Below are positions 3,682 through 64,000 of a stretch of DNA of 64,000 nucleotides, piece by piece. A program made the position numbers and the translations under genes. The notes beneath the pieces are model-generated. The model was not told the origin of the DNA, made no database searches, and saw nothing but the letters and a program-made list of their open reading frames with translations. The first letter of the stretch is position 1. The number at the start of each line of letters is the position of its first letter. The DNA is from Hypanus sabinus (lineage: Eukaryota): assembly GCF_030144855.1 (NCBI RefSeq), contig NC_082708.1, positions 102,114,001 to 102,178,000 on the forward strand, given 5' to 3'.

Positions 3682-4891
3682 GCACACACAAATCGCTGGA
3701 GGAACCTGTTACTTGTAAAAATGCTATTCCTTTCCCTCAATTCTTCCATCTCTGCCGCATCTGCTCTCAGGATGAGGCTTTTCATTCCAGAATGAAGGAG
3801 ATATTCTCCTACTTCAAAGGAGCCTACCTTCCTCCACCATCAATGCTGCCCTCAATCTCATTTATTCCATTTTTTGCATGTCACCCATCCTCCTGCCACC
3901 AAACCAGGGATAGGGTCCCTCTTGTCCTCACCTATCACCCCACCAGCCTCTGTGTCCAGCAGGTAATTCTGCGTAACTTCCGCCATCTCCAATGGGGTCC
4001 CACCACCAAGCACCCCCCCCCCCCCCACTTTCCGCTTTCCACAAGGATCCCTTGTCCAATTATCCCTCCCGGCACTTATCCTTGCAAGTGAAACTAGTGA
4101 TACATCTTACCTACATCTCCTCCCTCACTACCACTTAGGGCCCCAAACACCCCTTCTAGGTGAGGCAACACTTCACCTGTGAGTCTGCAGGGGTCATCTA
4201 CTGTATCCGGTGTTCCCGGTGTGACCTCTTCTATATTGCTTAGACCTGACGAATATTGGGAGACCGCTTCGCTAAGCACCAATGCATCATCTGCTACAAA
4301 AAGTGGGATCACCCAGTGGCCAACCATTTTATTTCCACTTCACTTTCCCATTCCGTCATGTCAGTTCATGGCCTCCTATACTACTGAGACGGTGCCATAC
4401 TCAGGTTGGAGGAGCAACACCTTTTATTTTGTCTGGCATGAACATTGATTTCTTGAACTTCTGGTAATGCCACTTAATCCCTTCACCATTCCCCATTTCA
4501 TTTCCCTCTCTCGCTTTCTCTTCTTACCTGCATATCACTTCCCTCTGGTGATCCTCCCCTTTTTCTTTCTTCTATGGTATTCTGTCTTCTTCTATCAGAT
4601 TCTCCCTTCTCTATCCCTGTATCTCTTTCACTAATCAACTTCCCAGCTCTTTACTTCACCCCTCCCTCCTTCCTGGTTTCACCTATCACCTTGTATTTCT
4701 TCCTCCCCTCCCCCAACTTCTAACTCTGACTCCTCATTTTTTTTCCCTCCAGTCTTGATGAAAGGTTTCAGCCCAAAACATCATCTGTACTCTTTTCCAG
4801 AGATGCTGCCTGGCCTGCTGAATTCCTCCAACATTTTGTGTGTGTTGCTTGGATTTCCAACATCTGCAGATATTCTCTTATTTGTGATTTG
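3682..4891 (+). mobile_element. 5'-truncated Penelope-like element (GIY-YIG region plus 3' pLTR) with a short inverted pLTR piece at its 5' end
   Basis: Peptides RDRVPLVLTYHP and PGTYPCK match the long copy at 35743-38604. 3' tail ...gctgcctggcctgctgaattcctccaacattttgtgtg; inverted cacacacaaatcgctggaggaac at 3683-3705. TSD agtattaacaggct (3668-3681) / agtattaagaggct (4892-4905). Confidence 0.9.
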
Positions 4892-12204: not shown

Positions 12205-14869
12205 AATCTATGCACGTATGCAATGTTGACATAATGGAAATCTTGAGCAGACCAATCCATTCCCCTCTAGGTCATTCTGAGGCCACACAGCAGAATGAAG
12301 TAGAATTAAATAGTCATTGCAGGTTGTGTGCTGGATAGTCTTACCACCTTCTCGTCACAAACCAAATGTGAACCTAGACTTGTAGATGAAGGGTACAAAA
12401 AAAGATAGAAAACCAAGTGGCCCTTTTCATCCTAAGATGTCCTTGAAGTTACCTGTGTACAATAATAACAACATCAGTTTTTCTTTCACCAACATCTACT
12501 TAATCTACCCATTACTTATCCATTTTATGCCAAAACTAAGGCAATCAAGAAATATTTTGACCCAAGTTCATGACTGAAATCATGGCATGATGCATGCCAA
12601 AACTGAATAACCTCCATTGGGCTTTCATTCATGGCTTGTCTTCTGTGCAACTTGTCTGCTCTACTGCTACCTCAGTGATTGCAGCATGACTGTGTGATCT
12701 TCTCCACTCAAATCCTAGCGCTGTATTATCTAGAATTTTTGCTAACGTCATCAAACTGTGGTTAACTTCCATTGTTCCATTCAGTTGTGGTCAAATAGAT
12801 GGCTGCCACTAACCACCGTGGCAAAAACTGTTAGATTACACCCTATTGTGCTTCTTGATAAATCTGCTATATTTTACTTAATTGATCATGAGGCTCGTCT
12901 CTGCTAATTATTCTCCATTATCTTGCTACTTAAGATTCCATTTCAGACATCCTGAGCTGGAAAAAACCCAAATGGCATAGCTGCCAGACTGGCTTTTCAG
13001 CTGATAATGAGGGAAGGGATATGAGAAAATAATCTACTTGAAAATTCTATTGTGTATTTGCTCATGACAGGACTGTTAAGAACGAAAACTACATAATAAT
13101 TTAGAGAATTTGTCTTGCCTTCATAATACAGACATCCTCCATTGTATCATATTGTACTTTGTAAGTTAGATTTAAAACAGATACAGCGGATCAAAACAGG
13201 GCATTTTGTTTTCACTACGTCCTCACTCATTATTTACATTTGGTTAGGTGACCAGCACTGATTTAATAAGTTGTACATGAGAAAATGCTTAAAAATAATG
13301 AACATCATATGCATTATAAATATTAGAACTGGAAGCAAGTGTTAATGCAGTAAGTTATTGAATTAAAGCTTTGAGGTCCTGGAAAGTCCAATGACTGGTG
13401 GTGGACAATTGTGCATCTGACTGAAAGGACCTTCATGACTACCACATCGGAGCACAGTGACTGAGTGACCACCGCAAGGACAAATGGTCAGAATCACCTT
13501 CAAACAGAATTGCCACGTGATGAAATATTTCACTCTTCTCCTGAGATCCTCACACGATGCTAGTCTTCGTGTGGTCTAATTCATTCCATATGATATTAAG
13601 AATTAGCTGAATATACAAGACATATAAAGGACAAGGTTCAAGGTTCAAACTACATTTATTATCAAAGTTTGGATACATTAACCAACCTTGAGATTCATCT
13701 ATTTACAGGCAGCTACAAAACAAAGAAATCCAAAAACATTTTAAAAACGACTGTCAAACTCCCAAGGTGCAGAGATAAAAAAAAATAGTGCAAACAATAA
13801 AAGTAAGCAAATAGTATTCAGAATGAAAGCGAGTCCACTGACATAAAGCCCAGAACAGTCAGAGCAGGCCACAGCATCAGCCTCCATTCAGCACAGGGCT
13901 GAGCAAATGTCATGGAGCAGTGGGCAGAACCAGCCCGATCCTTACCCTGTCTTTCCTATCAGGCCCAGTGTTTAAACTGTCCAAACCAAAAGGTTGTTTC
14001 TTGCACAGGGACTTGGGCCCTATCACTTCAATATGCTCTGGGTCCCAGAACCGCCGTCACAGTTTGGCCATTACACAAATTTTCCAAATCAACCTGGTGC
14101 TTAGATTTATCACACTTTGGGTCTTTCTTCACTCACAATTCAGGTGGACAGCCTTGATTCTTCCTCGCATCCACTGGCCCCTACTTTGCCTCGAATCTGC
14201 CTTGACCTTGCCCCAACTTCACCTCACATCTATTCACTTCAATCCTTGACTCCTCCTTGCCTCCGTCCACCTCTCCATTATTTGGTGCGATTGTTTACCT
14301 TAGATCTCACAAGAAAAATTGTTACTAATTAAGTATTTAGTTGTATTCTTTGTAATGTTTGTCGCTGAGCTTCACCAGTACCAGCTTAAACCGGAAGCGT
14401 TGTCAAATGTTTGGCTATACTGCTGAACAAAACAAACTCCAGAATTACCTTCATGTCTAAGTAAGTTGTTCCTAACCCAGATGCAACACTAGCATCTACG
14501 TAACAATGTGGACGACCGAATCGATGTGAACTCCCTACAAACAGCAGGACAGATAAAAGACAGCATTCTGCCACCCTGTTGGCCTACTCCCAATGGAGAA
14601 TGCAATCAAGGCCATGCCTACAAATCCTAGAAGTAACTTGATGAACGGGTTCAGTAACTTCACTGTAAACTTGGTTACTCAGTGATCAAGAAGTAAAACT
14701 TCATATTGTGATGCTCTTGGGGGTGGTGGGGGGGGGGGGGGCGAGCCAGACAGCCCGCCCTTCATTTCTAATGACTAACAATGTTTATTGTTCTTGTGTT
14801 AAAATGCTTTTGTGGGATTATGGTGGGAAGTTCCAGTTCATTTATTGTTACATTTTGGCCTGGGTTATA

Positions 14870-19479: not shown

Positions 19480-22400
19480 TGCACCAGCATTAGGATGGTT
19501 AGTTTGAGGCTTCAGCTCAAGAGGTTTAGATGAAAATAGCAAAGGCTCTTGGTATGTTTCCGCTGAGTTTCTTTCTTTGTCTATTAGTGCATAGCTAGTG
19601 CAGTGAGAATGGGTCCAGGATAGTGGTGTGTTCTTGATGTGAGATATGGAAATTGTGGGTGATCTCCAGTCTTCCTGTAACTACATTTGCATGAAGGGCA
19701 CCGAGCTGCAGATACTTACAAACCATGTAAAGGAACTGGAGGTGCAGCTGTATAACCTTCAGCTCATATGGGAGAATGAGGAGGAGGTAGATAGGAGCTG
19801 CAGGGGGTAGTCACTCCTAAGTTACAGGAGGCAAATAGTTGTATGTCTGTCAGGAGACGGAAAGGTAATAGGCAAAGAGTGCAGTATCCTTTGGCCGTTC
19901 CCCTCAGTAACACTCGGAATACTACTGGGGATGCAGTGACCTGGCAGGGGGGATCTGCAGTGATTTGGTCTCTGGCACTAAGTCTGACCCTGGAGCTCAG
20001 AAGGGAAGGGTGTGGCATGGTGAAAGGAGATTCAATAGTTAGACGAACAGATTCTGTGGATGTGAAAGAAACACCCAGCTGGTATGTTGCTGCCCAGTTG
20101 CCAGGGTCAGGGATGACTTCGATTGAGTCCGCAGCATTCTGAAGGAGGAGGGTGAGCTTCCAGAAGTCATGGTACATATTAGTACCTACGACATTGGTAG
20201 GATGAAATCATGAAGAGACAACATAGGGGGTTGGACAGAGAGCTGAAAAACAGGAACTCAAGGGTAGTAATCTCTGGATTGTCGCAAGTGCCATCGGCTT
20301 CTAAGGTTAAGAGGCTGACTCGGTAGATGAATGTGTAGCTGAGGAATTGGTGTTTTGGACAGGGTTTCAGATTTCTGCTTCACTGGGATCGCTTCTGGGA
20401 AGGCATGACCTGTACAATAGGGATGGGTTACTTCTGTACCTGAGAAGTAGCAACATTGTTGTGGGCAGGTTTGCCAGACCTGTTGGGGAGGGTTGAAATT
20501 AATTTATCAGGGCAATGGGAGCCAGAGCAACTGGGTATGCAAGTAAATGCCACCTGTAGTGAGCCTCTGAGGAAGGATAGGCCAGTGACAAGGAAAAATT
20601 GCAGTCAGTGGGATGAGTTGAAGTGTGTCTTTAAGTTAATAATGAGGGCTGGGTTCAACAGTTTGAAAAAGTGAATGAAGTAAAAGAGGAGAGTGCAGAG
20701 AAGGTTATCAGTGTCTCCAGAACAAATACAGAGACAAATATTTAGAATGGGATAAGAATTTAACTTACAGTATCATTGATACAAAATTGAAAAGAATGAT
20801 GAATACAGGACTGAAGGGGTTATATTTGAATGCACACAGTATATGGAAGAAGGTAGATGATCTTGTAGCGCAGTTCCATAGTGGCAGGAATGTGTTGTTG
20901 GATTCACTGAGTCGTGGCTGAAAGGAGACCATAATTGGGAGGTAATATCCAAGGATATACCTCTTATTGAAATCACAGGCAGATAGGATGTCATGACTCT
21001 GTTGGTTAAAAAAAAATTGAAATCCAATCCTAAGAAACAGGTGATGTAGAATCTTTGTGAGTAGAATTCAGAAACTGTAAGCATAGAAAGACTCTGATGG
21101 GAGTAATATACTAGCCTGTGAAGAGCATCCTGTATTTGTAGTACAAATTACAACAGAAGATAGAAATGGCATGTAAAAAGAGTAATGTCACAATAGTCAT
21201 GAATGGGGGGGGGGAGGGGGTTTCAGTATTGGTGAAATCAGGTTGGTGCTGGATTCCAAGAGAAGGAACTTGTAGAATGCCTATGAGATAGCTTTTATGA
21301 GCAGCTTTATGGTTTAACCTATTAGGGAAAAGGCATTTCTGGATTGGATGTTGTGTAATGAACTAGATTTAATTAGGGAGTCAGTGATCATGATATGATA
21401 AAATTCACCCTGCTGTTGTGAGGGAGAAACTAAATTCAGGTACATCAATATTACAGTGGGAAAAATGGAATTACAGAGGCATCAGAGAGGAGTTAGTGAA
21501 AGTTGATTGGAAAGGGACACGAGCAGAGTTGATGGCAGAACAACAATGGCTGGAGTTTCTGGGAGCAATTCAGAAAGCACAGGATAGTTTCATCCCAAAG
21601 TACTCTAAATGGAGGATGAGGCAACCATGGCTAACAAGGAAAGTCAAGGACAACATCAAAACAAAAGGAAAGGATATAATATAGCAAAAAATAATGGTTT
21701 TACAACAGAAGCAAATAAAAAAGCACAAAGCAGCAGAAGGATGAAATATGAAGGAAAGCTAGCCAATAATGTAAAAGAGGATGCCATAAGTTTTTACAGA
21801 TATATAAAGAGTAAAGGAGCGGTGTGAGTTGATAATGAATCACTGTAAAATGATGCTGGAGATGTAGTAATGGTGGACAAAGAAATGGGAGATGAACTGA
21901 ATTCATATTTTTTGTCAGTCGACACTATGGAAAACATTTGAAACATGCCAGAAATTTGGAATTGTCATGTGGTAGAGGTGATTGCAGTTAATATTACTAA
22001 GGAGAAGTTGCTTGGGAAGGTTTAAGATTTGAAGGTAGATAAGTCATCTGGAACAGTTGGACTACATCCCAGGGATCTGAATGAGGTAGCTGAAGAAATT
22101 GTGAAGGCATTAGTTGTGATCCTTAAAGAGTTACTAGGTTATAAAATAGTTCTGGAGGACTGGAAAATTGTAAATGTCACTCCATTCCTTAAGAAGCGAG
22201 GAGCTAATAGGTAGGAAAGTGTCAACCAGTTAGCCGAATTTCAATGGTTGGGAAGATAATGGAATCCATTATAAAGAATGTGGTTTTGGAGTATTTTGCG
22301 GCACATTTTAAAATACCCCAAAGTGAACATGGTTTCCTTAAGGGGAAATCTTGCCTGACAAAGTTATTCAGATCCTTTGAGGAAATAACAGGCAGTATAG

Positions 22401-27485: not shown

Positions 27486-27486
27486 T

Positions 27487-27498
27487 TGGTGACCCCGA
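27487..27498 (+). promoter_or_regulatory. Primer-binding site complementary to the tRNA-Trp 3' end
   Basis: TGGTGACCCCGA immediately after the 5' LTR matches the start of the known tRNA-Trp PBS (TGGTGACCCCGACGTGAT). Confidence 0.85.
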
Positions 27499-27524
27499 TG
27501 GTCCAAACGGGATTTGGGCCAAAG

Positions 27525-30500
27525 ATGACCGACTCTTCAACTGTTCACGCAGTTTTGCTAAAACTGCCGACTTTCTGGACGCTGCGACCATGCGTGTGGT
27601 TTAGCCAAGCAGAAGCCCAGTTCCAGATTCGGCAGATATCTTTTGATTCCACGTGTTACTATCGCGTGGCGAGTGCCCTTGACCAGGAGACGGCCACCCA
27701 AGTTGAGGATTTCATACAGTCACCCCCGGAAGAAGGCAAATATGAAGCATTCAAAGCGCTGCTCATTGGGAACTTTGGCCTCTCACGGCGTGAGCGGGGT
27801 GCCCGCCTGCTTCACCTGGATGGTTTGGGAGGCAGACTGCCGTCAGCATTGATGAACGAGATGCTGGCCCTGGCCGACGGACACAAGCCCTGCCTCATGT
27901 TCGAGCAAGCGTTCCTAGAGCAACTGCCCAAGGACATACATCTGCTGCTGGCTGATGCAGATTTCAGCGACCCCTGGAAGGTGGAGGCCCGGGCAGATGT
28001 GCTGTGGAAAGCCAAGAGGGAGAGTATGGTGTCCGTTGGTCAGATTACCAGGCCACGTGCCCAACAGCGGACCAGAACAGGCCCGGCAGGGAGGCGCACA
28101 CAACCCAGAGGCAGGAGTGAGGAGGCCAGTGAACAGTGGTGTTTCTACCACCAGCGGTGGGGCACAAAAGCCTGCATTTGTCGCCCGCCCTGCAAGGGCC
28201 AGGGCCAGCTGCCGCTAATGACTATGGCGGCTGGCCACCAGGAGCCTCTTGTACATCTGGGACTAACAGTCGGGACGTCGTTTCTCGGTCAACACCGGAG
28301 CGGAAATTAGCGTCTGGCCCCTGACGGGGTACGACACCCGCAACAGGAAGCCAGAACCCACCCTGAGGGCTGCAAAAGGCAGCATGATACGGACCTATGA
28401 CACCCGCACAGTGCAACTGCAGTTCGGCACCAGCCGGTTCACGTGGGACTTCACACTGGCCGCGGTGGCCCAACCACTCCTGGGGGCGGACTTCTTGTGA
28501 GCTCACAGCCGGCTGGTCGACTTGCAAGGGAAAAGACTGGTACATGCCGAGACTTTCCAGACGTTCTCCCTGGGTGAAGCCAAGTTGCCGGCCCCACACC
28601 TGAACTCCATCACCCTGTCGGACAACAAATCCACCAGAATCCTGGCGGACTTTCCATCGATTCTGGCACCGCCGTTCACGGTAGCCATGCCCAGACACGG
28701 GGTTCAGCACCACATCCCAACCCAGGGACCACCCCTCCAAGCCCGCGCATGATGGCTCCCCCCAGAAAAGCTCCGCCTGGCGAAGGAGGAGTTCAAGAGG
28801 ATGGAGGAATTGGGGATCGTACGGAGGTCCGACAGCCCATGGGCCTCCCCCCTGCACATGCTGCCCAAAGCAGCCGGGGGTTGGAGACCATGCGGCGACT
28901 ACCGCAGACTGAACGAGGCTACAACTCCAAACCGCTACCCCATGCCGCACATACAGGACTTTGCAGCAAACCTGCACAGGGCAAGAATCTTTTCCAAAGT
29001 AGACCTTGTCTGGGGATACCATCAAATCCCGGTGCACCCTGAAGACATCCCCAAAACAGCACTCATCACCCCGTTCGGCCTGTTCGATTTCCTCTGAATG
29101 CTGTTCAGCCTTAAGAATGCCGCATAGACGTTCCAGCGGCTAATGGATGCGGTGGGATGCGACCTGGACTTTGCGTTCATCTATTTGGACGACATCCTTA
29201 TAGACAGCATTAGTCGTCAGGAGCATCTGTCCCACCTCCGCCAGCTCTACTGCCGCCTGAGTGATTTCGGCCTCACGATCAACCCAGCCAAATGCCAGTT
29301 CAGTCTCGATACCATCGACTTCCTGGGCCACAGGATTACCAAAGACGGGGCAACACCTCTGCCCACCAAGGTAGACGCGATCCGCCACTTTGCCCGGCCC
29401 AACACGGTCAAAGGCCTGCAGGAGTTTGTTGGTATGGTGAACTTCTACCACTGTTTCCTCCCCTCAGCTGCCCGTTTCATGCGCCCTTTGTACACCCTAC
29501 TTGGGATGAGGAGGCCGCGGCCACTTTTGTTAAAGCCAAGGAAGCCTTGCAGATGCCGCGATGCTGGTGCACCCCAGAACAGACGTTCTGACCGCCCTCA
29601 CGGTGGACGCATCTGACACAGCAGTCGGTGGGGTGCTGGAGCAGCTCATTGAAGGGAGCTGGCAACCCCTGACGTTCTTCAGCAAGCACCTAAGGCCACC
29701 CGAACTCAAGTACAGTGCTTTCGACCGGGAGCTGTTGGCACTGGATCTGGCAATCCAGCATTTCAGGTACTTCTTGGAAGGCAGGCCATTCACCGCATTC
29801 ATGGACCACAAACCGTTGACCTTCGCGTTCACGAAGGTGTCCAATCCCTGGTCGGCTCGCCAGCAGCGACATCTGTCCTACATCTCCAAGTACACGACGG
29901 AGATCCAGCATGTCTCGGGAAAGGACAACGTAATGGCGGACGCACACTCCAGACCAGCTGTCCAGGCCCAGTCCCTGGGGTGGACTATGCAGCACTGGCG
30001 GAGGCACAGAAGGCAGACGATGAGATGCCCAACTACAGGACCGCAGCCTCGGGTTTGCAGCTGCAGGACTCTCTCATAGGCCCAGGTGAGAGGACCCTCC
30101 TGTGCGACGTGGCTACCAGCCAACCTCGCCCCATCGTCCCGGCAGCCTGGAGGCGATGAGTTTTCGACTCCATACACGGTTTGGTGCACCCATCTATCAG
30201 GACAACCATCCTGCTGGTCTCCAGCAAGTTCACGTGGCACGGACTTCGCAAGCAGGTCAATGAATGGGGCAGAACGTGTGTGCAGTGCCAAACAGCCAAG
30301 GTGCAGCGGCACACTAAAGCCCTGCCACAGCAGTTCGAACCCACCCACCAGAGGTTCGACCACATTCATGTGGATATCGTGGGCCCCCTACCAGTGTCCT
30401 GAGGAGCGCGGTACCTCCTAACTATGGTAGACCGGTTCACGAGGTGACCAGAGGTGGTCCCGCTCACCAACACATCTGCCGATTCCTGCGCCCGAGCACT

Positions 30501-32680: not shown

Positions 32681-32995
32681 AGTAATATCTACCCCTGTAA
32701 ATAGCAGGTCACATACTTGATATTTGAGGCCATTCAGGTGTCACTCCATTCATTGTAATGAGCTTAACAGATTCAACTTTCATTAAGGTTTATATATAGC
32801 TCATCTGATGTAAAATAAAATTTCAAAGCATCTTGCAAGGAGTGAGTGGACACTGCAACAAGTGAACAATCTTAAAATGGGAGATTAATAAATCAGCAAA
32901 AACACAAGCCTTTAGGGACAGGAGACAAGTTAAGCAGCAACAACTCATAAAGTAAATGTGGAAAGACATGTTTATATAGTACATAACAGAAACTC

Positions 32996-34698
32996 AAGTC
33001 AAGTCAAGTCAAGTCACTTTTATTGTCATTTCAACCATAACTGCTATGTACAGTACATAGTAAAAATGAGACAATGTTTTTTCAGGACTGTGATGTTACA
33101 TGACACAGTACAAAAACTAGACTGAACTATGTAAAAAAACAACACAGAGAGAAAAAACAACTACACTAGACTACAGACCTACCCAGGACTGCATGAAGTG
33201 CACAAAACAGTGCAGGCAATACAATAAATAATAAACAGGACTATACGACAGTAAGGTGTCAGTCCAGGCTCTGGGTATTGAGGAGTCTAATAGTTTGCGG
33301 GAAGAAACTGTTACATAGTCTGGTTGTGAGAGCCCGAATGCTTTGGTGCCTTTTCCCGGATGACAGGAGGGAGAAGAGTTTGTGTGATGGGTGCATGGGG
33401 TCCTTCATAATGCTGTTTGCTTTGTGGATGCAGCATGTGGCGTGAAGTCTGTAATGGCAGGAAGAGAGACCCCAGTGATCTTCTCAACTGACCTCACTAT
33501 CCACTGCAGGGTCTTGTGATCCGAGATGGTGCAATTTCTGAACCAGGCAGTGATGCAGCTGCTCAGGATGCTCTCAATACAACCCCTGTAGAATGTGATG
33601 AGGATGGGGGGTGGGAGATGGACTTTCCTCAGCCTTTGCAAAAAGTAGAGATGCTGCTGTCTGTCTTTGCTATGGAGCTGATGTTGAGGGAACAGGTAAG
33701 ATTCTCCGCCAGGTGAACACCAAGAAATTTGGTGCTCTTAACGATCTCTACCGAGGAGCCGTCAATGTTCAGTGGGGAGTGGTCACTCTGTGCCCTCCTG
33801 AAGTCAACAAATATCTCTTTTGTTCACATTCAGAGACAGGCTGTTGTCTCTGCACCAGTCCGTTAGCTGCTGCACCTCCTCTCTGTAAGCTGACTCATCA
33901 TTCTTGCTGATGAGACCAACCACGGTCGTGTCATCGGTGAACTGGATGATATGGTTCGAGCTGTGTGTTGCAGCACAGTCGTGGGTCAGCAGAATGATCA
34001 GCAGTGGACTGAGCACACAGCCCTGGGGGGGCCCTTGCTCAGTGTGATGGTGTTGGAGATGCTGTTCCTGATCCGGACTGACTGAGGTCTCCCAGTCAGG
34101 AAGTCTAGGATCCAGCTACAGAGGGAGGTGTTTAGACCCAGCATGCTCAGCTTTCCAGTCAGTTTCTGAGGGATGATTGTGTTGAATGCTGAACTAAAGT
34201 CTATGAACAGTATCCCAACGTATGTGTCTTTTTGTCCAGGTGGGTTAGGGCCAGGTAGAGGGTGGTGGCAATGGCGTCATCTGTTGAGTGGTTGGGCGGT
34301 ACGCTAACTGCAGGGGTTGCAGTGAGGGGGCAGCAGGGTCTTGATATGCCTCATGATGAGCCTCTCGAAATACTTCATGATGACGGACATTGAGGCAGGA
34401 CACTGAAGACTTCTACACGGGGTCAATGGTGGTAGTCTTGAAGCACGTTGGAATGGTGGCGCTGCTCAGGGAGATGTTGAAGATGTCAGTGAGAACATCT
34501 GCTAGCTGGTCTGCACATCCTCTGAGCACTCTGCCAGGAATATTGTCTGGTCCAGCAGCCTTCTGTGGGTTGACCCTGCACAGGGTTCTTCTCACATCGG
34601 CCACAGTGAGACACAGCACCTGGTCATTTGGAGGAGGGGTGGACTTCCTCGCCGCCACATCATTTTCCACCTCAAAGCCGGCGTAGAAGTTATTCAGC
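32996..34698 (-). mobile_element. 5'-truncated Rex1/Babar-like LINE with (CTTGA)n tail
   Basis: [62 protein letters not shown]; (caagt)n at ~32995-33015. Confidence 0.93.
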
Positions 34699-34843
34699 GG
34701 TCACATATGTGGCCCACGCTCCTAGAAGATAGCAGTGTGGTTAATGTAGATGAACTGAACACTCTGATGAGGGAGAGGGAGGAGTGGAGTCCGTCACCTT
34801 GCTCGATACCGGACCCCTAGGCCTGAGTCAATGTAGTAGTAGT
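34699..34843 (+). mobile_element. Probable RTE-like LINE 3' end with (TAG)n tail, opposite in orientation to the adjacent Rex1 copy
   Basis: gtggcccacgctcctagaagatagc resembles RTE C-terminal coding (VAHVLED-like); ends gtagtagtagt. Lies inside the TSD acagaaactc (32986-32995 / 34844-34853). Confidence 0.5.
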
Positions 34844-35519
34844 ACAGAAACTCGGGATCAGAGCTCAGTGGTGGACAGCTCAGAACTATCTTGAATGAGG
34901 GGGAAAGGGGAGGTGCATGGAGGTTGGAAGTGGGATTGTAAAGGATATGTATAAATCTTAAAAGGACATCTGAGTAGGGGAAAAAAATTACCTACAGAGG
35001 TAAGAACTGCTCCAGGACTTGTGAAATCTGACTTCTATAGGTGAGGTCCATGCGATTTGTGGATCATACATGCAAAAATTAATTCAGTGCAAACCATATG
35101 TAAACATGCCCTTTAACACTGTTGCATATGTCCAAATCCCTGTGCCCCTATGTGTAACATACACAGATAGAACAGCGAGCACTTTCAGTACACAATTTTG
35201 CTTTGATTAAATTACTTCAGCTATCATATGTACATATGTATGCTGCATGAAATAATTTGTAAGCTCTTCTATCCAGATGAGTCAGAAGTAAAAATGTTAG
35301 GTGGAACCCTGTTAGAAAGATGTATTCGTCAGTGATAGTATATATATTGATAAATCAAAGTAGGCTGCTGCCAGAAGCACAAAATAAGAAAATTATTCAA
35401 GCCTGATGTGCTGGTGCTTTGATCCACAGGGTAGGAAAGTAATTTGGCAAAATTCTTGTAACTGCTAGCCTCACAGCAGCTTATGAACCAAGCCTAATCT
35501 ATGAGGAACTGGGGACAGA

Positions 35520-38500
35520 TCAGAATCAGGTTTATTATCACTGATATATGTTATGAAATGTTCTGTTTCACAGTAGTAATACAGTATCAGTGCAATACAT
35601 TAAAAATTACTGTAAGGCATAATAAAAATATATAAAAACTAAATAAATAGTGCAAAGAGAGAGCAAGCAAGTGTGGTAATTTTCATGGGTTCATAAACCA
35701 TTCAGAAACTGATGGTGGAGAGGAAGAAGCTGTTCCTAAACTACACACACAAAATGCTGGTGGAACGCAGCAGGCCAGGCAGCATCTATAAGGAGAAGCA
35801 TTGTCGACGTTTTGGGCCCTTCGTCAGGACTAACTGAAGGGAAAGATACTTTGAAAGTAGTGGGGGGAGGGGGAAATGCAAAATGTTAGGAGAAGACCGG
35901 AGGGGTGGGATGAAGCTAGAGCTGGAGAGGTGATTGGCGAAAGTGATACAAAGCTGGAGAAGGAAAAGGATCATGGGATGGGAGGCCTTAGGAGAAAGAA
36001 GGTGGGGGGAGCACCAGAGGGAGATGGAGAACAGGCAGAGTGATGGGCAGAGAAAGAGAAAAACACAAACAACTAAATATGTCAAGGATGGGGTAAGAAG
36101 GGGAGGAGGGGCATTAACGGAAGTTAGAGAAGTCAATGTTCATGCCATCAGGTTGGATGCCGGTATATAAGGTGTTGTTCCTCCAACCAGAGTGTGGATT
36201 CATCTTGATAGTAGAGGAGGCCATGGATATTCATATCAGAATGGGAGTGGGACGTGGAATTAAAATGTGTGGCCACTGGGAGATCCTGCTTTCTCTGGCG
36301 GACCGAGCGTAGGTGTTCAGCGAAACAGTCTTCCAGTCTGCGTCGGGTCTCACCAATATATAAAAGGCCACACTGGGAGCACCGGACGCAGTATAACACA
36401 CCAGCTGACTCACAGGTGAAGTGTTGCCTCCCCTGGAAGGACTGTCTGGGGCCCTGAATGGTGGTGAGGGAGGAAGTGTAAGGACAGGTGTAGCACTTGT
36501 TCCATTTACAAGGATAAGTGCCAGGAGGGAGATCATTGGGCAGGGATGGGGGTGTTGAGTGGACAAGGGAGTCGTGTAGGGAGCGATTCCTATGGAAAAA
36601 AGAAAGGGTGGGAGGGAAAGATGTGCTTGGTAGTGGGATTCCGTTGGAGGTGGCGGAAGTTACAGAGAATTATACGTTGGACCTGGAGGCTGATGGGGTG
36701 GTAGGTGAGGACAAGGGGAACCCTATCCTGAGTGGGGTGGCAGGCAGATGGGGTGAGGGCAGATGTGCAGGAAATGGGAGAGATGTGTTTGAGAGCACAG
36801 TTGATGGTGGAAGAAGGGAAGCCCCTTTGTTTAAAAAAGGAAGACATCTCCTTCATCGTGGAATGAAAAGCCTCATCCTGAGAGCAGATGCAGCAGAGAC
36901 GGAGGAATTGTGAGAAGGGGATAGCGTTTTTTGCAAGAGACAGGGTAGGAAGGGGAATAGTCCAGGTAGCTGTGAGAGTCTGTAGGCTTATAGTAGATAT
37001 CAGTAGATAAGCTGTCTTCAGAGATAGAGACAGAAAGATCAAGAAAGGGGAGGGAGGTGTCAGAAATGGACCAGGTAAATTTGAGGGCAGGGTGAAAGTT
37101 GGCGGCAAAGTTAATGAAGTCAACGAGCTCAGCATGCGTGCAGGAGGCAGCGCCAATGCAGTCATCGATGTAGCGAAGGAAAAGAGGGGGACAGATACCT
37201 GTATAGACTTGGAACATGGACTGTTCCACAAAGCCAACAAAAAGGCAGGCATAACTGGGACCCATGCGCGTGCCCATGGCTACACCCTTGGTTTGGAGGA
37301 AGTGGGAGGAGCCAAAGGAGAAATTATTGAGAGTAAGAACTAATTCAGCTAGATAGAGGAGAGTGGTGGCAGAGGGCAATTGGTTAGGTCTGGAATCCAA
37401 AAAGAAGCGAAGAGCTTTGAGACTGTCCTGTTGGGGCATGGAGGTATATAGGGACTGGATATCCATGGTGAAGATAAGACGGTGGGGGCCAGGGAACTTA
37501 AAATCATTGAAAAAATTCAAAGCGTGAAAAGTGTCACGAACATAGGTGGTAAGGGATTGAACAAGGGGGTATGAGTTCGTTGGGGCAGGAGCAAGCTGAG
37601 ACAATAGGTCTAGCTGGACAGGCAGGTTTGCAGATCTTGGGTAGGAAGTAGAAATGGGAAGTGCGGGGTGTGGGAACTATGAGGTTGGTGGCAGTGGCTG
37701 GGAGATTCCCAGAGCTGATAAGGTTGGTGATGGTATAGGAGACAATGGCCTGGTTCTCCTTAGTGGGGTCATGATCAAGGGGTAAATAAGAGGAGGTATC
37801 AGCTAGTTGTTGCTGTGCCTCGGCCAGGTAGAGGTCAGCACGCCAGACTACAACAGCTCCCCCCTTATCAGCAGGTTTTATAGTGAGGTTGGGACTGGTG
37901 CGGAGGGAGCGGAGAGCAGAGCATTCGGAAGGAGTGAGGTTGGAATTGGAACAGGGTGTGGTAAAGTCAAGACGGTTGATGTCCCATCGGCAATTAGCAA
38001 TACAGAGATCTAGAGCAGGTAGAAGACCAGAGCGGGGTGTCCATGAAGAGGAGGAGGGTTGAAGACAGGAGAAGGCATCATCGGTGGGGGTAGGAGAGTC
38101 CTTGTCAAGGAAGTAAGCTCGGAGACGGAGCCGACGGAAGAAGAGTTCAGCGTCATGGCCTACGCAGAACTCACTGAGGTGTGGGCGAAGGGGTACAAAG
38201 CTGAGGCCCATACTGAGGACTGAGCACTCTGCCTCAGAGAGTTGAGGGTCGGAGGGAATGGTAAAGACCCGGCACGGATGAGAGATGGGATCAGAGGGGG
38301 GAGGGAGGCTGGTAGTGTCAGTGGAGAGGGGAGGGTTGGGGTGAGAGGAAGATGGAGCCTCTGAGGGCCCAGGTGATGATGGGATCTGAGGGAGAGGGGA
38401 TTGCAGAGTGGTGGTGGGGGAGGGGGAGACGGGAGTCACAATCTCAGCATGTGAAGACCCGGCCTGGAGTTCAAGGCTGGAGTCGCAGTTGGTGGTTGCG

Positions 38501-38910
38501 CAATCGCTTTGAAGCTGTCCATGTCCGTTGGAACCCGTGTTAATGGTGCTGGAGTCTGGGTTTTCAATATGCCCTGGGTCGCTGGGGCAGCCGAGATCGA
38601 CTGGTAAACTGTTGGTTGTGTTTCATCAGGCTCCTGTACCTCCTCCATAATGGTAGTAGTGAGAAGAGGATATGTCCTGGATGGTGAAAGTCCTTCATAA
38701 TGGATGCCACTGCCTTGAGGTATTGCCTTTTGAAGATGTCCTTAATGGGGAAGAGGCCTGTGTCCATGATTGAACTGTCTGAGTTTACAACACTCTGCAG
38801 ATTTTTCCTGATCCTGTACCTTGGTACCTCCTCAATACCAGATGCTGATACAGCCAGTCAGAATGTCCTTCATGGTGCACCTGTAGAAATGTTCCTGTCT
38901 TTGGTGACAT
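35520..38910 (-). mobile_element. Rex1/Babar-like LINE 3' fragment split by the Penelope insertion (parts 35520-35742 and 38605-38910)
   Basis: Tail cagaatcaggtttatt; ORF 38564..38767 (IMKDFHHPGHILFSLLP..RRYRSL). The two parts read through at ctgttcctaaact|gttgg. Confidence 0.85.
35743..38604 (-). mobile_element. Penelope-like element (Neptune-type): RT, Cys-rich linker, GIY-YIG endonuclease, 3' pLTR
   Basis: IKPADKGGAVVVW, QTKGVAMGTRMGPSYACLF, LRYIDD, TDIYYKPTDSHSYL, YCVRCSQCGLLYIGETRRRL. 6-bp TSD TAAACT (35737-35742, 38605-38610). Frameshifted. Confidence 0.96.
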
Positions 38911-39129
38911 GTTCTTTATCTTTCCATCTCCCTTTGCTTTATTTTTACTTTCACTGTTTTTGAAGGGAAATACTTTGCAGTTTCAGGATCCTTCTTATAG
39001 ATGTTGCCGCTGGAGGTTCCTTAAGTGCGTGAACTTTCAAACCTTCAGTCTCAGTCCCACATTTCTCTATTGATGGTTTGAGGGTATGCTTGCAATATGT
39101 TTTCTGAATTCTGCTTGGGTTTCACTCTT

Positions 39130-41097
39130 TTTTAAAAAATCTTTTTTATTGTATTTCAAGTAGTTACAAAATAAAAGTGTGGAAAAAAATGTATATTACC
39201 CATTCCCTCTCCCCCCTAGCATCCCTATAGAAAAAAAAAGAGAAAGAAAGAAAGAGTGCCTGGATATTGGAAGATCCACACATGCTCCATGGAGTTCGTA
39301 ATAACTTTAGTATATATATTTATTTCTTTCCCCAAATAACCAATTATTTCATCTTTGGAGCACCTATATATTTAATCCTGTCTTTTGTAAATAAGGGTGC
39401 CAAACTTTCAAAAATGTTTCATATTTATCTCTTAAATTATAAGTAATTTTTTCAAGTGGAATACAGCTATACATTTCTTTCTTCCAACGATCTATACTTA
39501 AACATGTATCCGATTTCCAAGTAACTGCAATAGCCTTTTTGGCTACTGCCAATGGAATTTTTATAAATTCTTTCTGATATTTATTCAATTTAGGTATCGG
39601 TTTTATCCCTTCAATATCACCTAGTAAAAATAATATTGGATTATGTGTAAGTTGTATTCCAATAATTTGTTCCAATAAAACTCTTAAATTTGTCCAAAAA
39701 GGTTGAATTTTAGAACAAGACCAAGTAGAATGTAAAAAAGTACCAATTTCTTGGTTACATCGGAAACATTGATCGGATAAATTTGGGTTTAATTTATTTA
39801 TTTTTGTGGTGTAATATATAATTGATGTAAAAAGCTATATTGCACTAATCTTAACCGGACATTTATTGTATTTGTTATACTCTCAGGACGTAGTCTTGAC
39901 CAATTTTTTTCTTCAATTTTAATATTCAAGTCACTTTCCCATTTTTGTCTTGACTTATGGACTCCTTGTTTAATTGCCTGTTTTTGAATCAAATTATACA
40001 TACAAGAAATGATTTTTTAATCTTTCCTTTTTGAATTAAAGTTTCTATTTCATTAGATTCGGCAATAACATTGTTTGACCTAATTTTTCTCTTAAATAAG
40101 CCCTTAGTTCAAAGTAACAAAAAAGAGTGTTGTTTGATACTTTATGTTTATTCTTTAATTGATCAAATGACATTAATATACCTCCTTCAAAACAATCACC
40201 TATATACCTAATCCCTTTTTGAAACCAATTATATTAAAGTTGATTATCCATTGTAAAAGGAATAAGTCTATTTTGAATTAAAGATCTCTTTGCTAATAAG
40301 GATTTCTTTATCTCATCGTCAACATTTATCTTATTCCATAAGTCAATCAAATGTTTTAATATAGGAGATTCTTTCTTTTCCCGTATCCATTTAGATTCCC
40401 ATTTATATATAAAATCTTCTGGTATATTTTCTCCTATTTTATCTAGTTCTATTCTAATCCATGCCGGTTTATCTTTCTCAAAAAAAGATGCAATAAATTT
40501 AAGTTTATTAGAATACAAGATTAACTTATTTGCTGATGATGTTCTGCTTTATCTAACAAACCCATTACACTCATTGTATAAATTATCCTATAGATTAGAA
40601 GAATATGGGAAAATATCAGGTTATAAAATAAATTGGGATAAAAGTGAAATTTTACCTCTTACTAAAGGAGATTATAATCAATGTCGATTAATAACCCAAT
40701 TTAGATGGCCGGCAAATGGTATAAAATATTTAGGTATAAGAGTTGATAATGATATAAAGAATTTATATAAATTAAGTTACCACTATTGAAAAAAATTCAA
40801 GAAGATCTTGATAAATGGATGGTATTACCAATAACATTAGTAGGTAGAGTAAATACCATAAAATGAATATATTTCCTAGATTACAATACTTATTTCAAGC
40901 ACTACCAACACAAATACCCCAGAAGTTTTTTCAAGAGTTAAGTAAATATGTGAGGAAGTTTCTTTGGAAAGGTAAGATGTCAAGAATATCGTTGGAAAAA
41001 TTGACATGGAAATTTGATCTAGGAGGGTTACAACTTCCAAATTTTAAGAATTATTATGAAGCAAATCAACTTAGATTTATTGCATCTTTTTTGGGGG
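39130..41097 (-). mobile_element. L1/Tx1-clade LINE, 5'-truncated with 5' inversion (non-inverted 39130-40505 minus; inverted 40506-41092 plus)
   Basis: AATAAA and poly(A) on minus at ~39130-39150. ORF2 C-terminus AKKAIAVTWKS...LEKITY on minus; LFADD, SGYKINWDKS and GGLQLPNF on plus. TSD gggtttcactctt at 39117-39129 and 41098-41110. Confidence 0.93.
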
Positions 41098-41364
41098 GGG
41101 TTTCACTCTTGACAAAACTCAGAAGAGAAATCATATTTGTTGCTTTTCATTCAAGAGGTACAGACACTACCCAGCTAACACAAATTTTCTTGGAGGTATA
41201 AGAATGCAGGTGTTGAAGTTCAGAGTTCTTGAGGTGGACAGGCATTCGTGTGGGTTGATTTTACAGGCTGAGGCGCTGCATCAAGACCTTGGTCTGGAAT
41301 TTGCGCATGAAACTAGTAATGTGGTCTTCCCATTTGATTCTGAAAATGTAACCAAGGCATTACT

Positions 41365-41700
41365 GTTGTGGTCATCTATTGTATCCAGTGCTCTCGATGC
41401 AGCCTCCTCTACATTGGTGGGACCTGTCACATATTGAAGGAACTGCTTCATCAAGCACTCCACACCACCTGCCACACGTGGGACTTCCCGGTGGCCAAAT
41501 GTTTTAATTCCGATTTCCATTCCCATTCCGATGAGTCAGTCCATGGCTTCCTCTTGTGCCAAGCTGAGGCCACTCTCAGGATGGAGGAGCAACACCTTAT
41601 ATTCCATCTGGGTAGACTCCAACCTGATGGTATGAATATTGATTTCTCCTTCTGGTAATAAATTCCATCCTCCCCCACTCTATTCCCCACCCTGACTTTT
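41365..41700 (+). mobile_element. Penelope GIY-YIG fragment
   Basis: ORF 41368..41658 VIYCIQCSRCSLLYIG...EEQHLIFHLGRLQPDGMNIDF. Confidence 0.9.
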
Positions 41701-42029
41701 GCACTAGTGATGATATTGCTCTAAGGTCTTTTATTGATCCAAAATCTGAGTTTCGCAACCCAAAGGAAAAAAGAGCTTTGATACAACATTGTACACGATA
41801 AGTTCTGTTGGGGTTCATAGGTCTTGATGTTGAAGATGCATTGTTAAACTTAGCTCTGTCAATATTTGCTGCTTGGGAAAAGCAATGGGAAGGACAACTA
41901 CCTGGGTAAGGAAGTGGCCTACGTTTATGCATTAATTTTGACCAAAGGTGGCAGGAAGGTAAATTCCTTCAGCTTCCTTGCGATCTATCTCACTGGCTAC
42001 TTTATCGCAATACTATAATGAGCTGGATG

Positions 42030-63091: not shown

Positions 63092-64000
63092 TTTTTTTTC
63101 TTTTTCAATCTTTTTATTATTATTAATATCAACAAAATAAAATTGATACATAGAAAATGGGATTACAAACATACACATTTCAACTGAACATGAAAGAATA
63201 CATAAGCAATGGTTACAGTGTAAATGAGTTTTCCCAAATCATGGATGATACAAGTAACAAATAAACAAGGCAAACCTAGGTATATCAAAATATATGTTAA
63301 AAAAAACAGAAAAAATAAAAAAAATTGCAAAAAAAACTAATCTAATAATCTAATAACTAATAAGGAAAAAAAAAACAAAAAAGGAAAAAGGAGAAAAAGA
63401 ATAAATGAAAAAAAGGGCTGTTTATAATATCTCACAAAAATACAAAATCGTCAGTGTCGTCAACTCCGATCCTCTCAACATATATAAAATCGAAACTGGA
63501 AAAACAAATAGGCTTGGAACAGGGTCATATTACATCATATGAAAATATTGAATAAATGGTCTCCATATCTTTTCAAATTTAATAGAAGTATCAAATACAA
63601 CACTTCTAATTTTTTCTAAATTTAGACATAACATAGTTTGAGAAAACCAATGAAATACGGTAGGAGGATTAATTTCTTTCCAATTCAACAAAATAGATCT
63701 TCTAGCCATTAATGTAAGAAATGCAATCATTCAACAAGCAGAAGAGGATAAATGGAGTGAGTCCATCATTGGTAAACCAAAAATTGCAGTAATAGGATGA
63801 GGTTGTAAATCAATGTTCAATACCCTAGAAATAATATCAAAAATGTCTTTCCAATATTTTTTCAAAAGTGGACTCGACCAGAACATTTGAGTTAAAGACG
63901 CTATCTCAGAATGACATCTGTCACAAATAGGATTTGTATAGGAATTAAAATGAGCCAATTTATCCTTGGACATATGAGCCCTATGCACAACCTTAAACTG
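63092..64000 (-). mobile_element. L1/Tx1-clade LINE 3' end (runs off the window)
   Basis: ORFs 63731..63988 (CDRCHSEIASLTQMFWS) and 63530..63730 (ARRSILLNWK...LEKIR); A-rich tail on minus at ~63092-63120. Confidence 0.9.

Follow-up and report, generated by a model that had tools for sequence, protein, structure and literature searches.

A dead copy of an L1-clade retrotransposon, ~2 kb long, lies within a stretch of 64,000 nucleotides from the stingray Hypanus sabinus (the whole of this stretch is referred to here as the window). The copy is a functionless molecular fossil. Very probably it is the product of one L1-clade retrotransposition event, in which twin priming generated a 5'-inverted, 5'-truncated and dead copy. 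An earlier note on this DNA had recognized the geometry of twin priming, and the components of that geometry are indeed present: adjacent, overlapping parts of ORF2 on opposite strands, one target-site duplication (TSD) around both of them, and an empty site in related organisms.

The copy is delimited by the TSD GGGTTTCACTCTT, a perfect (13/13) direct repeat located at 39117-39129 and 41098-41110, where a 13-bp TSD around both pieces had been reported. A 13-mer repeat at both ends of the L1 homology, to within 5 nt, would be expected only ~8e-6 times given the local base composition. Thus, a single TSD encloses two opposite-strand pieces of one L1-clade ORF2. The left TSD copy ends on the plus strand with …CTCTT-3', which would be the primer for the first strand. 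Next to it lies the non-inverted, minus-strand piece (39130-40509, 1380 nt), composed of the C-terminal part of ORF2 (39364-40509, corresponding to approximately residue 880 of human ORF2p through to the end) and a 3' UTR of 234 nt (39130-39363). The ORF2 reading of this piece starts with …NKLKFIASFFEKDKPAW and includes …NKLKFIASFFEKDKPAWIRIELDK…; it passes through a CCHC motif (39768-39715) and terminates with the stop codon at 39366-39364. The 3' UTR ends with …AATAAAAAAGATTTTTTAAAA, in which AATAAA (39150-39145) is followed by 15 nt and then by A4 directly against the TSD. This segment is thus sense-oriented, and its 3' end lies at an endonuclease-type nick, which would be 5'-CTCTT/GA. The earlier description of a poly(A)-tailed 3' part on the minus strand was correct as to the strand and the 3' end; the tail, however, is just four A (39130-39133, T on the plus strand). 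Decay of the non-inverted part of ORF2 is evident from two or more frameshifts and from an in-frame stop codon (40236-40234).

The inverted 5' piece occupies 583 nt of the plus strand (40510-41092), running from FADD into the thumb region (~695-885 of human ORF2p). It reads …KINLFADDVLLY…, with FADD at 40529-40540, GGLQLPNF at 41022-41045 and NQLRFIASF at 41064-41090. This piece is also decayed, by a stop and frameshifts near 40777-40862; the frameshifts in both pieces are of one base. While the two pieces lie on minus and plus strands as claimed, their junction is at 40509|40510 and not at 40505|40506. The internal-priming end of the inverted piece adjoins the 5' copy of the TSD, and between this end and the right TSD copy are five extra G (41093-41097; C on the strand that would have been extended from the second nick), a feature absent from the earlier description.

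The two pieces share a short segment. The non-inverted piece begins with 29 nt (minus strand, 40481-40509) that recur, reverse-complemented, as the outermost 29 nt of the inverted piece (plus strand, 41064-41092); this outer end would be the internal priming point. This inverted repeat matches at 27 of its 29 positions and is the sole long one of high identity; when it is laid in register, identity drops at once beyond both of its ends. The inverted duplicate of ~25 nt that had been proposed is therefore real and slightly longer. Within the overlap, the inverted copy retains the Q…R codons of relatives, and both changes are in the non-inverted copy. Two differences in 29 nt would be compatible with decay after insertion, which falls short of proving a single RNA template. 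Since the comparison of the two pieces as to RNA or subfamily is confined to this 29-nt overlap, the 2/29 mismatches leave room for RNAs of slightly different subfamilies. At the inversion junction itself, no microhomology was found from the non-inverted side.

The ORF2 features of the copy are an L1-type reverse transcriptase (RT) with FADD, followed by the thumb, the wrist and a C-terminal segment with the CCHC motif. Pfam places RVT_1 on 40514-40786, and this same region matches residues 696-785 of human ORF2p (E 3e-13) among solved structures, while 40863-41066 matches residues 815-882 (E about 1e-12). Human L1 ORF2p chains are the sole structural matches below 1e-3, except for one weak, unrelated chain at 7e-4; with a cut-off of 0.1, the structure search with 40863-41092 also returned two weak unrelated chains, at E 7e-4 and 0.08. 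In phmmer comparisons with human ORF2p (residues 696-1248), E ranges from 1e-12 to 1e-18. Judged by these alignments, the element is an L1-clade LINE that is far from mammalian L1, and the RVT_1 and human ORF2p matches, distant as they are, bear out the earlier assignment to a non-mammalian L1-clade element.

Protein relatives also indicate how the two pieces belong together. A word-based protein search with a 94-aa piece spanning the junction gave no matches, and an exhaustive search with the same piece gave 10 distant fragments of at most 39% identity, with no full-length ORF2 among them. Among these ten is P0003, an uninterrupted 457-aa ORF2 C-terminal protein, which aligns to residues 815-1248 of human ORF2p. 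Its residues 1-74 map to the inverted piece (40863-41084, plus strand), and the rest maps to the minus strand: residues 66-208 to 40515-40090, residues 225-306 to 40046-39801, and residues 296-441 to 39831-39388. According to this mapping, the pieces lie next to each other in one L1-clade ORF2 and overlap by ~9 residues, and it is at approximately residue 880 of human ORF2p that the inversion point falls. In a contig of a second, distant relative, Exo_endo_phos lies upstream of RVT_1 and is followed by the C-terminal ORFs, all on one strand, as is normal for a colinear element. The present copy is truncated within the RT and lacks ORF1 and the 5' UTR.

Contiguity of the two pieces in uninverted copies is seen directly in contigs of other members of the family. 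Joints classed as 'opposite strands' (40470/41092 and 40484/41086) come from such contigs, which run from ~41086-41092 straight into ~40484-40470. Thus, uninverted copies are contiguous exactly where the present copy flips. A search of metagenome contigs for a 24-nt pattern spanning the uninverted junction found no match.

The site before insertion is preserved in relatives. Contigs of four runs, from four related organisms, were compared with the window over 38300-41900. In no public run did the share of this stretch's sampled words exceed 46%, so that these runs represent relatives rather than the source, and the internal junctions (40509|40510 and 41092-41098) were read from the assembly. 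In three of the organisms, single contigs (X15 record 1, 711 nt; X16 record 10, 656 nt; X17 record 15, 776 nt) join 39116 directly to 41098, with no intervening letters. Their flanks are ~3% diverged from the window; in these contigs the 13-mer occurs once, and there are just three G. In the fourth run, the contig match ends at 39116, with 48 letters beyond it that are unaligned. Given the precise empty site in three relatives, for which the earlier note had called, the 1981 bp are a derived insertion of the window's lineage. These 1981 bp comprise both pieces, the G5 filler and one TSD copy, and thus the whole composite arrived in one event, after the split from those lineages.

These empty sites bear on several other ways in which opposite-strand pieces could come about. 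The 5' 583 nt of an ordinary 5'-truncated insertion might have been flipped afterwards by an inversion in the chromosome; inversions do occur, and nothing specific to this locus speaks for one. This would require one of the breakpoints to fall precisely on the TSD boundary, a simple inversion yields neither the 29-nt outer duplication nor the G5 filler, and an orthologous non-inverted copy, which the earlier note had named as evidence against twin priming, is found in none of the three relatives, all of which have only the empty site. We regard a later inversion as extremely unlikely. Two independent L1 insertions at the same spot would also place the pieces on opposite strands if their orientations were opposite. 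This account fails because the piece on the plus strand stops inside ORF2 and is without a 3' UTR, tail or TSD of its own; in addition, one TSD surrounds both pieces, the pieces are adjacent in L1 coordinates, and the three relatives examined have neither of them. It has hardly any probability in its favor.

A further possibility is that reads of different L1 copies were misjoined during assembly, and the abundance of the family lends this some substance. In all four runs, the word depth of both ORF2 pieces exceeds that of the single-copy flanks by about four orders of magnitude. Contig-derived depth is a coarse measure, but this excess indicates that the L1 family is very abundant in the related genomes. 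A perfect TSD, an exact empty site, a filler and an overlap in twin-priming register would not be expected together from misjoined reads, however, and we consider such an artefact highly improbable. Depth is uneven along the element: over the terminal 3' UTR (39130-39267), it is far below that of ORF2 in the contigs of the four related organisms. These last ~140 nt are far less represented, and the ratio of UTR to ORF2 depth varies strongly between organisms. The low-depth segment may mark a subfamily-specific 3' UTR. The target, itself single-copy, is flanked by short, extremely abundant repeats at 38542-38662 and 41567-41687.

Twin priming would produce the observed structure in the following way. 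The endonuclease of the element would nick the plus strand of the window at 5'-CTCTT/GACA, a pyrimidine/purine site that resembles the TTTT/AA preferred by the L1 endonuclease. The nicked 3' end would then prime on the first residues of the L1 RNA's poly(A), giving a cDNA of ~1380 nt (39130-40509), and the other strand would be nicked 13 nt away. The minus-strand 3' end, …GAAACCC-3', would receive five untemplated C, and a second cDNA would start inside the same RNA, just upstream of …GCAUCUUUUUU, and extend 583 nt further 5', beyond FADD. The first cDNA would overrun the start point of the second by 29 nt, which would leave the duplicated segment. Finally, the cDNA ends would be joined at 40509|40510, and gap repair would generate the 13-bp TSD. 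That the nicks came in this order, that a single RNA molecule was used and that G5 is untemplated are our inferences.

The outer junction is the unusual part of this copy. Complementarity between the target end and the internal priming point, which the earlier note had raised, is absent: the overhang …GAAACCC-3' does not pair with the RNA directly 3' of the priming point, UGAGAAAG, and a 5-nt G filler lies between primer and cDNA. In hominid 5'-inverted L1, extra nucleotides at this position are present in only 3.9% and microhomology is the rule (PMC2912911); relative to these, the present copy is in an unusual class. The G5 sequence (41093-41097) matches neither the target nor L1. It cannot be assigned to the target, whose left flank has just GGG and whose counterparts in the relatives' contigs have no extra letters. 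Templating by a G6 run in the 3' UTR fits neither the number of letters nor their continuation, and annealing of the overhang to an upstream CAUCUU would delete sequence that is still present. Expansion of a G3 run after insertion was deemed unlikely. The filler appears to be an untemplated addition that preceded priming.

Both the G5 filler and the missing microhomology at the outer junction resemble end joining, as would be expected had two molecules contributed to the copy. The second-strand 3' end could have primed on a second L1 RNA, or end joining could have attached a separate fragment of L1 cDNA to an ordinary 5'-truncated insertion, at its 5' junction. The differences at two of the 29 overlap positions point the same way. 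So may two LINE-like 3' ends, the right-hand one putative, that lie ~5 kb away, with different tails, head-to-head within a 10-bp repeat; these would mean that in this genome both ends of a target can prime on, or capture, different RNAs. However, a random fragment has a chance of only ~1% of ending so close (within 30 nt) to the position where the first piece is truncated, while one shared template predicts just such near-exact adjacency together with an overlap of 29 nt. The 2/29 differences, moreover, fit decay after insertion in a copy that has stops and frameshifts. An origin from two molecules is thus unlikely, and twin priming on one RNA is the preferred reading.

To our knowledge, twin priming has been characterized almost entirely with human and mouse L1. 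The model for mammalian L1 is summarized in PMC2912911, and its application to human and mouse 5'-inverted L1 is credited to Ostertag and Kazazian (2001), as cited in PMC2912911 and PMC5668948. Inversion affects approximately 18% of the L1 insertions that are polymorphic in humans (PMC5668948, PMC11484939). Among human 5'-inverted L1, small duplications at the inversion junctions are known (PMC5668948), and the TSDs are reported to span 10-20 bp (PMC4245944). The present copy shares with human and mouse 5'-inverted L1 a TSD in the range of 10-20 bp around an inverted 5' segment and a non-inverted 3' segment, the adjacency of these segments in L1 coordinates with a small duplication, a 3' end at a pyrimidine/purine nick, and a product that is dead on arrival. 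Unlike them, it belongs to an L1 family that is only distantly related to human L1 and resides in a stingray host; it also has G5, lacks microhomology and ends in a tail of only A4. With ordinary 5'-truncated L1, the copy has in common the TSD, the 3' end, truncation within ORF2 and decay, and differs in having the additional, reversed 583-nt upstream segment and the 29-nt overlap.

A second comparison is provided by Yamaguchi et al. (2014), who studied LINE inserts in DT40 and HeLa cells (PMC4245944), the sole comparative cell-culture work in the literature collection searched. In that work, 5' inversions were seen only with human L1 in human cells and in one insert of zebrafish Nimb-2_DR in DT40, and it was concluded that 5' inversion depends on both the host and the LINE species (PMC4245944). 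Extra nucleotides at the 5' junction, frequent in chicken DT40 (PMC4245944), are a further likeness to the present copy, whose TSD length is within the range tied to 5' inversion. In contrast to those inserts, the present copy is a natural, germline insertion of a non-mammalian L1 in its own host. In the literature collection searched, there was no report of a natural 5' inversion of a non-mammalian L1 (fish, reptile, cartilaginous fish, Drosophila or plant), and the matches for those lineages were reference-list citations or mammalian work only.

Thus, the mechanism is already known, and it is the lineage, that of cartilaginous fish, that is new. A clean germline case with an orthologous empty site shows that the reaction also takes place outside the pairing of mammalian L1 with mammalian cells, and it also offers a concrete case of second priming without microhomology. 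The earlier note had held that a fish-lineage L1 can twin-prime and that this bears on when the mechanism arose; the lineage does yield the product, but one insertion gives no date. The copy is a single fossil, and its value is as a motive for a genome-wide census in elasmobranchs, where the L1 family appears to be very abundant. More speculatively, and on balance doubtfully, the second-strand 3' end in rays might routinely prime reverse transcription without base pairing, after untemplated C-tailing, in which case twin priming would be ancestral to the L1 clade. If this were true, twin priming would be more than 400 million years old, perhaps shared by other LINEs, and independent of mammalian host factors. 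The head-to-head LINE-like 3' ends at 32986-34853 are a supporting lead for this idea.

At that locus, a 10-bp direct repeat, ACAGAAACTC (32986-32995 and 34844-34853), surrounds two putative LINE 3' ends arranged head-to-head. The left-hand one belongs to a LINE on the minus strand that has an RVT_1 match, a C-terminal match of the ALKBH8_N type and an (AAGTC)n run at its end; the right-hand one, a putative LINE, terminates with (GTA)n. Provided that each is indeed a LINE 3' end, the two 3' ends of the target would have primed on different RNAs.

The rest of the window is largely transposon-derived. Pfam searches of its large ORFs returned retroelements only, including DUF7041 at 27486-28307 and RVT_1 at 29143-29613 and 36876-37604. 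No host gene was found in the 64 kb, and Rfam gave no matches in the window, which is CpG-depleted (observed/expected 0.34). The only other copy of the L1 family in the window is a fragment at 63545-64000 on the minus strand, an L1-clade ORF2 C-terminal segment that runs off the window end and matches P0003 residues 293-443 with 27% identity. Many of the relatives' contigs extend past 41648 into a long C run, and homopolymer G/C runs of 10-14 nt are found in the window at 4013-4026, 14728-14741 and 21205-21214.
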